DNA of 64,000 bases, from contig CAJFCJ010000020.1 in NCBI GenBank assembly GCA_904063045.1, positions 1,356,916 to 1,420,915 on the forward strand, read 5' to 3'. This stretch comes from Dimorphilus gyrociliatus. Lineage: Eukaryota; Animalia; Annelida. Of the stretch, positions 1-9,750 are shown piece after piece; the first letter of the stretch is position 1; each line of letters opens with the position of its first letter. Under the pieces are notes generated by a model that searched no databases, was not told where the DNA came from, and saw only the letters and a program-made list of their open reading frames with translations. The translations under genes and the position numbers were made by a program.

Positions 1-534
1 CTCTCATAACACGAATGGGCCGTTCTTTATGTAATAGAAAAGAAAAGGGAAGATTGTTCTTTAATCAATAAATACAAAAAATAATCAGTTTGCAAAGTCT
101 TTTAACATGGAAATTTTCCCACCAGAAATAATGTTTTTTCTATGCGGATGTTCTCTTCTTTCATACTATTTTTATAATATTATTTAAATCAAACAGAAGG
201 TTATTTTTTTCGATTTTCCCTTCCACTCCCACTCGTATTTAATCGATTGTCTTCATTTGGTACAAATTGAAACATTTCCATTTAAAATTAATGGATTTTA
301 AGATTACCTACACCTTTCCAGTTTCAATTAATATCGGGTAAGAAAGGGAGGTGGCGATAATTGAGAACAGTATTGAACTTGCCAAACGTTATTATGAAAG
401 CAGGCGGTGGATCAATACTAAACAAGTAAATGCAGCGTTGTTTGTAAGATGATCTCGATTAATGTAAATCTACATCTCTGTTATCTATCACATTGAAATT
501 TAAAGGCGAAGACAAGCTTACTCTCAAAGTAGCT

Positions 535-3113
535 ATGGCTCTTAAAACGAAAAATGAGTTTGGAATTGCGGATTATATTGTTTTTTCTTTGGTTTTAATA
601 ATTTCAGCTTCCATTGGAATATTTTATGGATGTTTCGGATCAAAGCAACAGACCACACAAGAATTTTTAATGGCTAATCGGAGAATGTCTATAATTCCAG
701 TTTCGATGTCTTTACTAGCTTCCTTTATGTCAGCTATTACATTATTAGGAACGCCCGCCGAAATTTATGTATTTGGAACAGAATATTGGCTAATATGGAT
801 TGGGTACTTTATAATGATACCCTTAGCTGCTCACGTATTCGTTCCAATATTCTATAAGCTTAAACTAACAAGCGTATTCGAGGTAAAAAAAAAAAGCTAA
901 AGTTATTAAACTTCTTTCTTTTTATCTTAATAATCTCTTATAAAAACTCTTCTTTCTTATTCTTTTTTTGCTTCAGTACTTGGAAATGAGATTCTGTAAA
1001 GGAGTGAGAATATTTGCAGCAGTAGTTTTCATTATACAAATGATTATGTACTTGGCAATTGTTCTTTATGCCCCATCGTTAGCATTAAACGCCGTAACTG
1101 GTATTAACGTTTGGATATCCGTTTTGAGCGTTGGTTGTGTTTGTACGTTCTATACGTCAATAGTAAGTAGAAAGGATGTTAATTATAGTAGGCCTATATT
1201 TAAAGTTAATAACCTCGTGTAGTCGTTCCCTTTCATATAAAAGTTCTTTTTATTGTTTAGGGGGGAATGAAGGCAGTCATGTGGACCGATACATTTCAAG
1301 TGTGTATGATGATGGCTGGTTTGTTTGCAGTTTTAATTCAAGGTTCAATAGATTTTGATGGTTTTTCCAACATATGGAACATTAATAAGAGAGGAGATCG
1401 AGTTGAATTTTTCAAGTACATTTTATAGAATAATTATTATCCTCTTGACAATTTTATTTCATTTCTTTTCTCTGTCACTAGTTTTGATCCAGATCCTTTA
1501 AAACGGCATACAGTTTGGAGTCTAATTTTTGGTGGTGCATTTACTTGGTTAGCAATATATGGTGTGAATCAAGCACAAGTCCAAAGGGCTTTAACAACTC
1601 GTACTCTTCGGGAATCTCAATTGTTAGCATGTTTATATAAGACAGTTGTTATATCATATTTCTGGTTTTTTTTAGCGCACTATGGATCAATTTTCCGGGA
1701 CTAACATTAATTTTGACAATTACTGGACTTTGTGGAATGGTTATTTACGCTCAATATGAAAATTGCGATCCTATTGAATTTCATGATATTCCTCGTGATC
1801 AACTTTTGCCTCTCTACGTTATGGATAATTTAGCTCATATTAAAGGTTTAGCTGGTTTATTCACAGCATGCCTGTTTAGTGGAGCACTTAGGTTTAAAAG
1901 ATTCTTTTTTTACTTTAAACATCGGATATTTATTCTATTTTAAATGCAATGTGTTTGAAATTATAGTACAATTTCATCTGGCTTGAATTCTCTGTCTGCT
2001 GTAACTCTTCGAGATCTTTTTCAATTGATTTGGTTTAAAAATTTGACAGAAAAGAGAGCTACTTTTCTCACAAAGTTATTAGGTAAACTTTCAATAAACT
2101 CCTATACATACTTTATATTTTATATAAAATTATATATAACAACAGCTCTAGGATATGGGATTATTATGATTGCGTTAACATTTGTCGCTTCTCAATTGGG
2201 TGGTGTTCTTCAGGTATAGTGATATAGTATATTAAAAAATATACTAATACACGTAATATATTCAATATATTGCTAGGCTGCACTAGCTTTGTTTGGAATG
2301 ATTGGAGGACCTGTACTTGGTCTATTCATATTAGGTATAATATATCCTTGGTCTAACAAGTGGGTAAGTTGACAATGTAAATATATATATAATACCTAAA
2401 TTAATATATTAATTATAAAAATAATAGGGAGCATATGTAGGATTAGTGGTTGGTTTGATTGCGACAATGTGGCTAGGCGTTGGAGCAAATGTTTATAAAC
2501 CTATTATTGAAACTAAGCCTGTATCTTTATCTGACTGTGAAATAGCTAATAAATCATCAATAAGTACAACACAGAGTGTTATAACTCAAAGTATGACTAC
2601 ACCAAAAGAGTAAGAAACTTTTATAACATCATCAAGAACAGAAACATTTTGACTTATCTATTTAGGTACGAAGGATTAAGTTTCTATGAAATTTCTTATT
2701 TATGGTACAGTGCCTTTGCTGTTATTGTTGTTAATGTTATTGGCTTAGCCGTAAGTTTTATTACAGGTATGTAGTATTTGTCTTCCTAAATTCAACTAAA
2801 TCGACAATTATGAATGATGTATTTTCAATATGTTATGCATACATTTTTTTCAGGTCCCCAATCACCTTCGGAAGTAGATCCAAGGCTAATTTGTCCTATA
2901 TTCGATATATTCTGTTGCTACCTACCTCTAGAATGGAGAGAAAGATTAAAATGCGGAGTAAAAAACGAAAATCTTACAACGGCAGATGATCAGGAAAAAG
3001 ATAAAGAGCTAAATGAAGAGTTTCATAAATTATCTGTTAGTTCTTTAAATTCTAAAATAAGTCGAATAACCCAACAGACAGAAGTGATTTATCGTTATGA
3101 ATCGACAGTCTAA
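535..3113 (+). CDS. Sodium:solute symporter, SLC5A6/SLC5A8 (SMVT/SMCT/NIS) clade; multi-exon
   Basis: ORF fragments carry SSF-family motifs ([65 protein letters not shown]) separated by short GT-AG introns. ATG at 535 ([10 protein letters not shown]), stop at 3113. Confidence 0.9.
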
Positions 3114-3247
3114 GACTTTTCTAAGAGTTGAAAACGAGTGACGCCTTCTTTGTTATTGTATTTACTTTTCAAAAGATTTGTATACAAATAGGAAAATAAC
3201 TTACTAATAAAACTATTCTATTGTTTTTAATTTCCTTTTTCAAGATA

Positions 3248-6200
3248 ATGCAAATATTGAAGTTAATTTTATTGATTTGTTCTTTAATATCTGTTAATGG
3301 ACTATATAGAGATTTACCATTTTTATTAAATTATGACAGAATTAGTAATTCTTTAAAAGTATATAAAAGAAAATTTAATCGATTTAAACGTTTTATTTAT
3401 ACAACTAATAAACCTCAGCCTATACATTTAGAGTTAAAAGTATTTGATAGACGTTTACATATTGTATTGTTTAAGCAGGTGACAGGTATTTTTTCAAGAG
3501 ATGCTCATATTCTTTTAGATGGATTACGAATTATGAATGGTTTTAAAGGAGTTCGTTTCTTAAGTGGATATGTTTTTAATATTAAATACTCGTCTGTAAA
3601 TGGAATTTTTAATGGGGAAAAATTCTTAGGTGATATTAAGTTAAGCAGTGGAAAAAATTTGATTATAGATGACGCCTTATCCTATTTTAATAAATCAATT
3701 CTGGAACAACAGGGATTCCATTCTGTTGTTTATTCAACGGATCAATTGAATTTAACTGGAATACGGTGAGCATTTGAAAACGAAACACCCCCTCTCTTTT
3801 TTCTAAATTAAGTGCTTATTTCCTCAACATTTTAGGCCTATATTAATCGATCAACCAAAAGTAAAGATTAAATAAATTAAATCTTAACTAAAATAAACAA
3901 GCTTTTCACATTTTTTCTACGATTGTCTTCCTTACGAATAAAATTCTCTTTTTGAAAGACTAATGTACTTGACAAAGGATATTTGAGACGCTTTAGACGG
4001 TCTAGAATAAAAATATTGGGGAAAAAACTAGTCAAGATCTGTCAAATGAGATTGACGGTTGATCCATTATTCGTAGAAGACTTTATAAAAAATAGAGGAT
4101 TAGTAAATACACACAAAAGGAGAGCTATTCTCGCTAAGTTATTTCGCTTTCTTTTTAATAGAGATTAGAAGAGGCGGTACAGAAGATTAAAACCGACATA
4201 TTATCTATATATTCCAGATTTTACAACATAATTAAATCGACTAATTTAGGACATAACCTTGAATTTCGAATAAAACATATTAACTTCCTAACTAGAGAGG
4301 CTAATTGCATGGGACCAGAGTCAATGACTTTGTGTAGGAAGAGCTTGGATCCATTTAATACTTTGATCGCTTTTAGCGAAATAAATCATGATGAATTCTG
4401 TCTAGCACATTTATTCACTTCCCGGTCATTCGAAAACGCTTTAGGCATAGCTTTCATAGGAAATCCCAATCATACTACTTCCGGTATCTGCTCTAAAAGG
4501 GCCAACAACATAGGGTTAACAACCAGAGGACCTGTTAGTAAATTCTTACCAATCACTGTCTCAGCGTTTACATTTTCCCATGAAATTGGACATAATATGG
4601 GATGCTGTAAGATCTTTTTAAAATAAAATAAATTCTAATAGAAAAGAGTCTTTTCGAACATGTTATTTAAGGATAGATCACGATGAGAAAGGTAAAGTTC
4701 GAAGTGAGTGTTTAGGTAACGAAGAAGATGGACAATATCTAATGTCTATTAAAGTTGGGGGTGGCACAAAAAAGAATCATGCAATTTATTCTAAATGCTG
4801 TATAGAAAACATGATTAACGTAATAGAACATCGGTTTAAAGAGGCTAGCGATTGTTTTAAAGATAGGGATGAGCCGTTTTGCGGAAATATGATAGTAGAG
4901 AGGAATAATGATGAAGAATGTGACTGTGGCTATGATAACGAATGTGGATTAGACAGTCAGTGTTGTCATCCGAAAAGTTTCCAGTCAACAGAATCGAATA
5001 GAAGCTCATGCAAAAGGAAGTCTGGAGCAATGTGCAGTTTGTCAGAGGGAGTTTGTTGTGAAGTAATAAACTGCAATTTCAAACCAAAAGTAAGTTTAAT
5101 TTGATTATTCATTTATTGTGTGATAGTAAATAACACTTTAAGGGAACTCCTTGTGAAGAGGAAACCGAATGTCGGGAAGAAGCACAATGCAAGTTAGGCT
5201 AATTAGTTTTAAGAGCAATTAATACAAGGTAAAACTTTGGATTCTTTTCCAGCGGAAGAAAAGCGATGTGTCCTTTGGGTAAAGAAAAACCGAGTGGCTT
5301 AGTCTGCGCGTCTCGAACAAAGATTTGTCGATCTGGAGAATGTCTAGACTCAATATGTTCTCTGGTTAATTCGTCCCAATGCGTACCAGACTATATTGAC
5401 AATGACCCAGAATTGTTATGTTTCATTTATTGCAAATTAGGTAATAGATGTTTACCAATGTCCAATCATACCCTTCAATTAATGAATTATAGTAGAGTAA
5501 AGCATAGTAAACTAGAAAATTTCATTAATATACAAGTTGGAGATTACTGTAATGGATCCGCAGGCTATTGTGATTCATTGAGACGTTGTAGACTTCAAAT
5601 ACCTTACGGACCATTGCCGAAAATCGGCAAATTTTTAATAGGAACAGGTCCTAATACATTATACCAATTTACAAGGCAAAAATGGTGGATATTTGGCATA
5701 ATCACTTTTTTACCAGTAGGATTTTTCGCTTTGCTTTTCTATATTTGTGATGTAGATATAGGAAAGATCGATAAAGTTGTGGAGAGCGTAGAAAAAGCGA
5801 TAAATGTCCATTCTCTATCTTCGTTAAGTAAGTGACTCTTTAGAAATTAATGTTGCCTCTTATGTAAGATGAACTATTGGCTTTGATTAGAATCTTCCCA
5901 ATCTTTGCGTAGGAGAAGAGATATTAGAGAGTCAAGCGAAATATATAGTCAATTTATGAGCATGAAACTAGCGTCTTCTTTAGATAGTAGTTTATCTAAA
6001 TGTAGACAGAAACGCCGTATTATAATTTCAAGAGCAAATGAAATAACTAGAGCTTCATCTAAATTATCCAGCACGAAAGCCATTTTAGTGCAAGACCGTA
6101 TGGATAAACTCAAAAAGATCGAAGAGAGGTCAGCAAAGAGAAGGGAAAAGGTTAGACGACTTAAGAGATTGGTCGATTACAAATTTTTTAAAGTTCCATC

Positions 6201-6399
6201 AAGTATTAGTATTACTTCTGGACGTGCAATTGATCAATTACATGTAATCAAGAAACGTTCGAAAGGAAACAATGAAAACCTACGAAATTTCTTGACAGTT
6301 CCTACTACTTTAACCGCTGCAAGTACCGAAGAGCTAGATACATTGATTTGGTCAGTATCTAATGGAGAAGAGTGCATAACCAGGGCAATTTCAAATTAA
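3248..6399 (+). CDS. ADAM10/kuzbanian-like metalloprotease-disintegrin, divergent; multi-exon
   Basis: Signal peptide and prodomain, then zinc motif HEIGHNMGC|YHD completed across an intron, disintegrin EECDCG, Cys-rich region (GYCDSLRRCR) and TM helix. ORF 5905-6399 joins in frame through intron 5828-5890 (A|AA=K) as the cytoplasmic tail. Exons around 3770-4217 are approximate. Confidence 0.8.
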
Positions 6400-7028
6400 T
6401 TAATAGAAATTAGTCGGAGGTATTTTAAAACTTGATTCGTTCAGTTTCTGCTAATAGCTTTCGTATATATTGATAATTGTAATTGTAAATACAGTATGTT
6501 ATGTATTAAATCCTACCCTTCATTAGATTTAGTGCAATTTCGATTTCTGTGGAGCGATTAAGCGTGTTTTCTAATTCATTTCATTTTAAACATAAAATAT
6601 TATTATAACAAAATTGATAAATTTCTCTTCCTTGGGAGAAAACAGAAAAAAAAATCTTAACATTTAGAAGAGCAACTAAGTCCACCTATCGGCTCTCTCT
6701 TGTAGACCATTCGGAACTATCATTCTCTCTCGTACACTACCATTTTGGATAATTCGCTCCGTATACTTTTTCTATGCAAAGAATATTGGATTGATGAAAC
6801 TTAGAGCTTTTCCTAACTTTTACATATAAAACGTTAGATTAAATTTGCTCTTTGGAATACACCGCCGCCTTTCCGATCATCTGTAATTGAAAAGCGAAAA
6901 TTGAAAGTATATAACCGGTACAAAAGCGTTAGATTTGAAGTTTCTGTCTTGAGAGCGTAGCTGGTGAGTGGATCAATCGGCTCTAGGGAGGAAATGATGA
7001 CCGACTCTTCCTTTATAATTAAGGAACG

Positions 7029-8594
7029 ATGAAGTCTCGTTTTATACTCTATTCACTTCTCCTACTAACCTTCATCTTTATACTATGCTTACTCTTTTGG
7101 GATTCCGCGATAACAATTGAGGTTAAGTTTTATTACTCTTCCTTCTACTTCTCCTAAAAAGAGAAGAAAGAAAACAAAATTTTCTACCGATTGCAAAATT
7201 GCGTGACATGCGTTATTTTACGCTAGAAATTTTACTTAACAGATCGGCAATCGGACGTCATACGAACGCGAAGAATCGATAACCTTTAGGAACTTACCAA
7301 CTTATTCTATTTTGCCGAAAACATCCGAGGCAAAGGCTTTCACAATTTTTAACAGGTTTCTCTTTATCTCTTAGATTTCAAACTATAACTTGGTTCAAAA
7401 AACACTATTCTCAATTCTTTTAGCTTTCTTAATCAAATACGAGCAATATGCCCGAAGATTCGACGCTTGAACGATTTAGACATATGTGATGTGAAACCGT
7501 ATAAAATCTCGACTAATGCGATGTCGTTCGGGTAAGTAGACAGAGAATATTCGTGCTTCACATAACAATATTGTGAAATATTAGTAAAAATGCCATATAT
7601 ATACTGTATATACTGTATATATACTGTGAAAAAATTAAAAGAACAGCACTCTGTTCGCATTTGAACGGTTCTACAGACATTTAGGATAAATAGGTCTAGA
7701 CTGTGCCCTATGAAACACCCCAAGGGAAGACGAAATATACTTTCTCGTTTAGTGGTTAGATAAGTGATAGTAGTAAAAAAGGGTGAAGAAAGGGAGACGA
7801 CTACGGATAAGTTAATCTTTTCCATTAGGTTGTGGAAATAATTAAATTTATAAAACGTCGCATAAAAATGACAAGGAAAAATATGTGAAAAAAAAGAAAG
7901 GAGAAGGGTCACGATAAGAGGTTAGAAAGGCTAGCGAAAAGAGAGATGAAGAAAAAATAGGCAAGAGAAGAAAAGCGACAAGAGAAGCGGCATTCGTTAG
8001 CGACGTACTTATAATACATTAGTCATATTAAAAAAAAAGTAATTGAGCTGATTATTATTGGTAGGAGTATGCATTTATTTCGCTCCAGGGGGGCATTTAT
8101 GAGAATTCAGAGCTGTAATATGAAGTAGCCTACTTACCATCAGGGGCTAAAATTCGAGTCTTGCAGATTTTTTTTTGCAGATTGCCTATTTTAGCTTTAG
8201 TCAAGGAAAAAGCCACTTATATTAGTGATTATTCAAAGCCAGGCTCATTCATATTCGCTTTCTCAGCTGTTCTTTTCTCCTTGATAGCAATCTCACCGTT
8301 AGCGTTGGCTTGCGAGACACTTTTTCTCCAAAGACGGAGGACGTGATAAGCATTCGTCTACGATTGAACGACGACTGGAATACGATCCGACGGCGCATTA
8401 GGCAGATTAGATTCAAACAATTACTCATTATAATTCCTGGAAGACTGCTAAAACTAGAGTTTCGTCGTCTATTTCATTTCCTAACGGATATCGAAGGAAC
8501 TGCTTTAAGAAAATGGCAAGTCACCACTTCTAGCGAGGTCGTCGTATTACATTACATTAACAGTTGGTACGCTTTCGAGTTAGTTTCACAATAA
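7029..8594 (+). CDS. METTL24-like (Methyltransf_22-type) unit 1 with N-terminal signal anchor; degenerate domain
   Basis: Manual exons with consistent phases: 7029-7121 (MKSRFILYSLLLLTFIFILCLLFW), 7243-7355, 7424-7531 (FLNQIRAICPKIRRL...SFG) and about 8288-8594 (KQLLIII...RKW...LHYINSW). They align by eye with unit 2. Middle exons (7532-8287) are unresolved. Confidence 0.6.
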
Positions 8595-8778
8595 AAAAGA
8601 GTATATACTATCTTTATCCTGCCCTAATTAGATAAGCTTGATTTTCCTTTATTCTCAAAATCTTCTCTCTTCTCCCGATTCCTAAATCCCTATAGAACGG
8701 TCTCTTTCTTAGTAATGATTAAACCCCTTCATTCTTTATGTCATTGTAATATACTCAAAAATCATTTCCACTTTTCAG

Positions 8779-9698
8779 GCACGTCAATCAATTTAAATTA
8801 CTAAGAGCACATCGAAATAAATTCAGATTTACCAATTCATTAGCAAGAGCAGAGAGTAAATTTTACGACTACGTAGAAGAATTGCAGGTGGGCTGTAAGG
8901 ATATTAGACGCCTTGGGGCTAAAGGAGATGGCGGCTATAGTATTTGCTTCGATAGTCCTTTTGAATTAAGGAACTCTAACTGCCTTATTTATTCCTTCGG
9001 GTAGGTAGATTAATTTAATCGATGGATGAGATTATTCCACCAGTTATGCGTAAACATTAATTCTATTAGGATAGGACTCGATTCGACTTTCGATCGGGAA
9101 ATCTCGAAGATCTATAACTGTACGGTTTTAGGTTACGATTATTCGTATGTATAAGACATTTTTATACTAATTCGCTTAGAGACCATGTCTTAACTATTTT
9201 CTATATATACTTAGCCTCCCATCAACCGTGAAGGGAATAAAACTACATCGGATTGCTCTTGGTGATAGTAATTATATAACGACGGACGGAAGGAATGTTC
9301 GAACTTTATGGAAAATTCTCGAATTAAATGGTCACTTAAATAATCATATCGACTTTTTAAAAATAGACATTGAAGGTGATGAATGGGACTCTCTACTTGC
9401 AGCTTTCATTCAAAATGCTTTGAAGAATGTAAAGCAATTAGCTTTAGAAGTTCATACTGATGAGTTAGTTCCGTCTTTCGAAGCGGCTAGTGGACGTACT
9501 TCCGGTAAACCTACATCGCTTGACCGTTACAAAAAGTTCGTTAAAGTAATGGAGGCTTTGGAAAGAGCCCATTTTTTTAAGTGGAGAAGTCAGCCAAATC
9601 CTACTAGTAGTTTCCGATCACAGAAAACTTCGAAAAAGAGGACTTGTTGTTATGATCTCAATTATATTAACTTAAATTTTTTCAATATGCAGACGTGA
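8779..9698 (+). CDS. METTL24-like methyltransferase domain, unit 2 (no own start exon found)
   Basis: Exons 8779-9001 (GCKDIRRLGAKGDGGYSICFD...LIYSFG), about 9071-9145 (IGLDSTFD...CTVLGYD) and about 9215-9698 (IDFLKIDIEGDEW, KQLALEVH, CCYDLNYIN). Confidence 0.85.
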
Positions 9699-9750
9699 TA
9701 AAGCCATAGATTTTTTGCTATATTTGTTATTTTGGAACTGGTTAAATTTT

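Follow-up and report, generated by a model that had tools for sequence, protein, structure and literature searches.

METTL24 proteins correspond to the Pfam family Methyltransf_22 (PF13383), which belongs to the FkbM-type Methyltransf_21 (PF05050) group. The papers found on METTL24 deal only with expression and prognosis, no substrate is established for animal METTL24, and a sequence search found no solved METTL24-like structure. A classical METTL24 has one domain. In the METTL24 of Gigantopelta aegis (P0004, 306 amino acids (aa)), an N-terminal signal anchor is followed by a linker and then by the family motifs, which include C..R.G..DGGW..C, YSFG, IDxLKxDIEG.EW, VKQL..E.H and CCYEL.Y.N. Here we describe a proposed METTL24-like gene of the annelid Dimorphilus gyrociliatus in which a predicted anchor, a linker and the motifs are arranged similarly, but with a degenerate remnant of that fold placed ahead of the complete domain. 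The gene lies within a stretch of 64,000 nucleotides (nt), hereafter the window, which corresponds to C20:1356916-1420915 of the 77.9-Mb D. gyrociliatus assembly. The window is AT-rich (G+C about 33%), and all coordinates given here are window positions. The species is a miniature marine worm with a compact genome, and an ORF of one paralog described below is 100% identical to an NCBI protein of D. gyrociliatus.

We propose that seven coding exons at 7029-9698 (+) constitute one gene. The first exon would supply the start codon together with a type II signal anchor, so that the rest of the protein would be luminal within the secretory pathway, or released. Exons 3 and 4 would encode a shortened, catalytically dead METTL24/FkbM-type domain remnant (unit 1). 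A phase-2 donor just before the old stop codon of unit 1, at 8578/8579 or 8566/8567 (a slash marks the splice site), would be spliced to the acceptor at 8779, and translation would run on in frame through unit 2, a METTL24-like domain that is complete and carries the motifs, giving a product of about 461 aa. The features of the locus are as follows.

7029..7121, + strand: exon 1, with the ATG at 7029 and the type II signal anchor MKSRFILYSLLLLTFIFILCLLFW; 31 codons, phase 0; donor gag/GTTAAG
7243..7355, + strand: exon 2, linker of 113 nt with phase 2 at its end; the donor cag/GTTTCT is weak
7424..7531, + strand: exon 3, ..CPKIRRLNDLDICD..MSFG, with which the degenerate unit 1 begins; phase 2 at both ends; donor gg/GTAAGT
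7532..8287, + strand: intron 3, 756 nt, atypically long for the D. gyrociliatus genome; holds simple repeats
8288..8578, + strand: exon 4, NLTVSVGL..HYINSWYAFE, encoding the C-terminal half of degenerate unit 1; alternative donor 8566/8567
8579..8778, + strand: proposed inter-unit intron, 200 nt, GTTAGT ... cacttttcag; the junction is present in a public gene model (P0154)
8590..8595, + strand: AATAAA hexamer overlapping the unit 1 stop at 8592-8594; possible alternative poly(A) signal, as read from the sequence
8779..9000, + strand: unit 2 exon a (U2a), linker and ..CKDIRRLGAKGDGGYSIC..CLIYSFG; phase 2 at both ends; donor gg/GTAGGT
9070..9144, + strand: unit 2 exon b (U2b), IGLDSTFDREISKIYNCTVLGYDYS, region after motif I; phase 2 at both ends
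9215..9698, + strand: unit 2 exon c (U2c), ..IDFLKIDIEGDEW..VKQLALEVH..CCYDLNYINLN..; stop at 9696-9698

Sequence and structure searches were run exon by exon. Judged by its sequence, unit 2 is clearly recognizable as a METTL24/FkbM-type methyltransferase domain. U2a matches PF13383 with 25.2 bits, above the gathering cut-off of 22.4, and U2c matches PF05050 with 23.2 bits, above the cut-off of 22.7 (PF13383 gives 20.6 bits on U2c). In a six-frame search of the genome with PF13383 the unit 2 locus scored 31.6 bits. A family hidden Markov model (HMM), which we built from 43 single-domain relatives, recognized all three exons, with E=1e-45 for U2c, E=7e-20 for U2a and E=6.5e-6 for U2b; homologs used as tblastn queries match U2a and U2b, and a HMMER search of a large protein library with U2c retrieved 384 relatives. 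We also scored a set of motifs comprising the DGGW-type loop, YSFG, D-x-SF-D/E, IDxLKxDIEG.EW, VKQL..E.H and CC-Y-x-L-x-Y-x-N. Unit 2 has all of them, as GDGGYSIC, LIYSFG, LDSTFDRE, IDFLKIDIEGDEW, VKQLALEVH and CCYDLNYINLN, and it carries YDY in place of the FDP motif. A related strain or species, represented only by proteins called from open reading frames (ORFs) of Logan assemblies and hereafter called the related strain, has U2c with 94% identity (P0005, P0155).

An earlier note on this DNA had described a signal anchor for unit 1, and an ATG followed by a hydrophobic anchor is indeed found at 7029. The exon 1 protein has K/R followed by a 20-residue hydrophobic core and resembles the N-terminus of P0004; splicing would join it to the rest of the protein. 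A word search with exon 1 gave no matches, which is uninformative for a 42-aa ORF. A 12-codon upstream ORF (ATGATG...TGA, 6994-7032) overlaps the main ATG (cgATGA) and may influence translation.

The lack of a visible start exon or anchor for unit 2, which the earlier note had also remarked on, was confirmed. There is no in-frame ATG for unit 2 upstream of ..VKVMEALE.., and the 184-nt gap at 8595-8778 contains just an out-of-frame ATG ORF of 29 codons, with no anchor-like ORF and no start exon. We rejected a start of unit 2's own within this gap, where any intron would measure about 33 nt. The D. gyrociliatus genome has been reported to have no operons and no spliced-leader trans-splicing (PMC7854359). 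Because unit 2 has no start of its own and the species has no trans-splicing, and yet the unit is intact and conserved, the route to it must be cis-splicing from coding exons that lie upstream. Two separate tandem genes, the first ending at 8594 and the second with its own promoter and an unrecognised start, are suggested by the stop codon with the AATAAA hexamer at 8590-8595, and a tandem pair of this family does exist elsewhere in the genome, about 3 kb apart. However, this arrangement is very improbable given the empty gap, with no room in it for an intron, and the good acceptor at 8778/8779, which opens the frame in a species without trans-splicing. In our view the two units are very likely parts of a single transcription unit. 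The proposal of a single gene, as first made in the earlier note, is very probably correct in view of the missing independent start, the phase-2 donors and the lack of trans-splicing.

The splice sites are compatible with such a gene. All four candidate donors for a junction to 8779 (7355, 7531, 8566 and 8578) are phase 2, and the seven exons add up to 1383 nt, or 461 codons, in frame. Both units share a phase-2 intron after SFG, at 7531 and 9000, as the earlier note had observed; the two SFG junctions have a 17-nt match in common, which was equalled in 6 of 500 shuffles. Read through without splicing, exon 4 terminates at 8592-8594. The donor favored in the earlier note, TG/GTACGC at 8566/8567, is indeed a phase-2 site whose frame fits the acceptor 8778/8779. 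A second phase-2 donor, GA/GTTAGT at 8578/8579, seems to be the better preserved of the two. The related strain reads YSYELVSQ where the window reads YAFELVSQ, so that the residues E-L-V over GTTAGT at 8579 are kept. The most economical change at this place would remove the +5 G of the 8566/8567 donor. Both this and the better preservation of 8578/8579 are judged from the related strain's protein only. The public gene model DgyrCDS12564 (CAD5124272.1, P0154, 2003 aa), a member of the 90% cluster of U2c, contains both ..MSFG/NLTVSVGL.. and ..HYINSWYAFE/HVNQFKLL.., that is, unit 1 joined to unit 2 through the donor 8578/8579. It has the same exons 3, 4 and unit 2 joined in frame as the gene proposed here, whereas exons 1 and 2, with the ATG and the anchor, are omitted. 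At the other end of exon 4 we place the acceptor at 8287/8288, which the public model also uses, because upstream of ..DSNLTV the related strain differs in a way that breaks the frame; an acceptor at 8266/8267 was rejected on the same ground.

Unit 1 is far less obvious. A Pfam scan of exons 3 and 4 gave no family at E<=1, and in a BLASTP comparison of the two units exon 3 matched at E=0.003 and the large exon had no match. The family HMM, run over 3356 six-frame stop-to-stop pieces of the window, ranked exon 3 best after the unit 2 exons, exon 4 seventh and exon 2 25th. The matched model positions are colinear, on the same strand and just upstream of unit 2: weakly 11-28 for exon 1, then 61-94 for exon 2, the adjoining 92-130 for exon 3 and 269-311 for exon 4. 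Composition-preserving shuffles equalled the real score in 2 of 3000 cases for exon 3, 2 of 3000 for exon 4, 58 of 3000 for exon 2 and 44 of 3000 for exon 1. These figures are more than chance would give, and we regard unit 1 as a real but shortened METTL24-like remnant. The likeness of unit 1 to unit 2 drawn in the earlier note is thus above chance but weaker than was implied, with a BLASTP match for exon 3 only; of the two tandem METTL24-like domains it had described, unit 2 is a full domain and unit 1 a motif-less remnant of about 135 aa.

An alignment by hhalign places exon 4 on the C-terminal half of the domain, with VISIRLRLNDDW on IDxLKxDIE.xEW, FKQLLIIIPG on VKQLxFEIH and VVLHYINSWYA on CYELYYINxNF, though with poor statistics (P=0.07, probability <1%). 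An AlphaFold2 model of exon 4 alone, made from a two-sequence alignment, has a mean predicted local distance difference test score (pLDDT) of 69 and a beta-alpha-beta-alpha-beta-beta order; its top Foldseek matches in the PDB are nearly all class I S-adenosylmethionine (SAM) methyltransferases, at template modeling (TM) scores of 0.4-0.5 and E-values of only 0.008-0.15. Compared with a canonical domain of about 235 aa, unit 1 is without the DGGW loop and the D-x-SF-D/E stretch, about 55-60 residues after SFG are missing, and the IDxLKxDIEG motif has degenerated to VISIRLRLNDDW. Because the loop, the post-SFG stretch and a proper IDxLKxDIEG motif are all missing, we read unit 1 as catalytically dead.

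The protein of the related strain bears on whether this remnant is still in use. P0165 matches exon 4 with 87% identity (91/105), mostly conservative changes and an unchanged frame and stop, and a stretch of 84 residues translated from the intron immediately before it cannot be aligned to the window in any frame. Since the frame and this level of identity are kept beside an unalignable intron, and U2c stands at 94%, exon 4 is under constraint, though less tightly than unit 2. This evidence makes it highly unlikely that exons 3 and 4 are decaying pseudo-exons of an old duplicate caught in a long intron, with exons 1 and 2 and unit 2 as the expressed part. The lost catalytic motifs and the roughly 100 residues missing from unit 1 would agree with decay, as would the atypical length of intron 3, but exon 4 retains an open frame of 101 codons and intact splice sites as well as its sequence, and AlphaFold2 predicts a compact fold for it.

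No further copies of exon 4 were found in the genome. Scanning intron 3 against Rfam and Pfam revealed no RNA family and no domain, only simple repeats; these are (TATATACTG)n and a 17-nt purine-rich unit, at 7596-7627 and 7936-7987. A candidate relic of U2b within this intron, at 8181-8234 (..ATYISDYS against ..CTVLGYDYS), was rejected, as it gives no HMM signal, has no nucleotide similarity (411 of 500 shuffles were as good) and lacks a canonical donor to exon 4.

The same sequence of a degenerate and a canonical domain occurs elsewhere in the genome. The PF13383 search found four further loci besides the window (L001-L004), of which L001, L002 and L003 encode a degenerate first and a canonical second domain in an uninterrupted ORF, and L004 is apparently single-domain. 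About 3 kb separate L001 from L002 (contig C4:1901034-1904586, -). These two ORFs of 416 aa are nearly identical, each has both domains, and they represent a recent tandem duplication of a two-domain paralog; in the annotation they correspond to P0003 (DgyrCDS3070, 477 aa), a protein with a signal peptide. L003 (L003:1417-2961, -, also on contig C4) encodes P0001, a single ORF of 514 aa with Methyltransf_21 matches in both halves. Its AlphaFold2 model (pLDDT 74.8) shows two parallel methyltransferase-like folds with a disordered linker between them (residues 254-276), and a related strain has a copy with 80% identity (P0002). P0001 and P0003 resemble the window gene as proposed here in carrying the degenerate and then the canonical domain on one polypeptide, and P0003 also in its signal peptide. 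In these paralogs, however, the ORF is uninterrupted, the linker has 45-50 aa and the first domain is nearly full length, whereas in the window gene the domains would be joined by splicing and the first is much shorter. As unit 1 does not specifically resemble the first domains of the paralogs, the fusion in the window may have arisen independently of theirs. A tree of unit 2 among single- and two-domain relatives was uninformative because of its long branches.

Predicted proteins with two or more METTL24-like domains are also present in several other lineages. They include proteins of 600 aa (PAA58805.1) and 653 aa in Macrostomum and 612 aa (ELU03686.1) in Capitella, a three-domain protein in Solemya and a four-domain protein in a chytrid. 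RefSeq models of 513 aa from Mizuhopecten (XP_021375118.1), Ylistrum (XP_060073341.1) and Ptychodera (XP_070552261.1) have, as database predictions, a degenerate first and a canonical second domain like the window gene. These proteins of two scallops and a hemichordate (P0139, P0167, P0045) have one common layout, and their sequences hint at an old, undescribed bilaterian subfamily. The earlier note had expected a tandem form to be a new architecture, an expectation that is not borne out, given that a public coding sequence (CDS) already joins the two units and that three paralogs and relatives in several phyla are tandem. The tandem layout is real but ordinary.

How the exons are combined in the mature transcript can be weighed against these findings. 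We favor the fused two-domain protein of 461 aa as the probable main product, and several observations weigh against it. Besides the poor exon 4 statistics given above, no cDNA-derived form of the fused protein was present among the protein libraries searched, and an HMM built from the paralogs' first domains gave no signal on unit 1, so that the parallel with them is one of architecture only. The junctions in DgyrCDS12564 may be ab initio guesses, because the model is itself a chimera with a doubtful last intron (see below) and because the annotation pipeline combined AUGUSTUS, EXONERATE and PASA in EvidenceModeler (PMC7854359), and the model lends weak support only. The end of unit 1 coincides with the fold's natural C-terminus, with the stop eight codons after ..YINSW, as in unit 2, and with the AATAAA hexamer overlapping that stop; this 3' end resembles that of a gene once independent and could still be used. 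Finally, exon 2, whose end is likewise in phase 2, could be spliced straight to 8779, the alternative raised in the earlier note.

The last two points are those expected if exons 1 and 2 were shared by two alternative 3' modules, one giving an anchored remnant of 206 aa from exons 1-4 and the other a single-domain enzyme of 328 aa from exons 1-2 and the exons from 8779 on. Both chains are in frame, at 618 nt (206 codons, to the unit 1 stop) and 984 nt (328 codons), and 328 aa is a usual size for the family, as in the single-domain P0004. The stop and the last five codons of unit 1 are kept in the related strain. On the other hand, this arrangement requires an intron of 1423 nt in a short-intron genome, and U2a has a linker of its own (HMM 69-94), which would duplicate that of exon 2. 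Tandem fusion is moreover the pattern of the three paralogs and of many relatives, and no such 206-aa protein occurs in the libraries searched, which is weak evidence. Taken together we regard alternative modules as unlikely, with an appreciable chance all the same. Phase 2 at both ends is common to exons 3, 4, U2a and U2b, so that exon choice could also yield three in-frame anchored products from a single promoter, namely the remnant only, the enzyme only, or both. We consider this rather improbable; if it were true, inclusion of the dead domain would regulate the activity or the targeting of a luminal methyltransferase.

For the fused protein, the junction from 8578 or 8566 to 8779 would be the main one used. 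SAM binding and methylation would be carried out by unit 2 only, and unit 1 could serve as a structural or substrate-recognition partner. The substrate would be a luminal molecule, perhaps a glycan, an idea that comes from the general biology of FkbM-type O-methyltransferases.

In the public annotation the gene is obscured. DgyrCDS12564 is a run-on chimera that strings together four or more unrelated genes and covers 505-9709 (+) of the window. In addition to the METTL24-like exons it is composed of the following parts.

upstream of the window: hydrolase-like part
505-3059, + strand: SLC5-type transporter
3407-6348, + strand: ADAM-type protease

The ADAM frame runs on for 16 codons beyond the annotated donor, to a stop of its own at 6397-6399. 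The last intron of the model (9607-9692, 86 nt, cta/GTAGTT ... atgcag/ac) replaces the conserved C-terminus ..CCYDLNYINLNFFNMQT with NVIKP, so that the conserved CCYDLNYINLN end is lost. The long ORF is kept in the related strain, which makes it probable that this intron is spurious.

The locus is of value chiefly as a correction, since beneath a public chimera of 2003 aa there is an ordinary gene that has a start and a signal anchor of its own and a probable product of about 461 aa. The locus opens no new architecture or mechanism. It is a further case of a widespread, undescribed pairing of a dead copy with a live catalytic domain in animal METTL24-like genes, and this pairing may help once the substrate of this orphan family of luminal methyltransferases is found.

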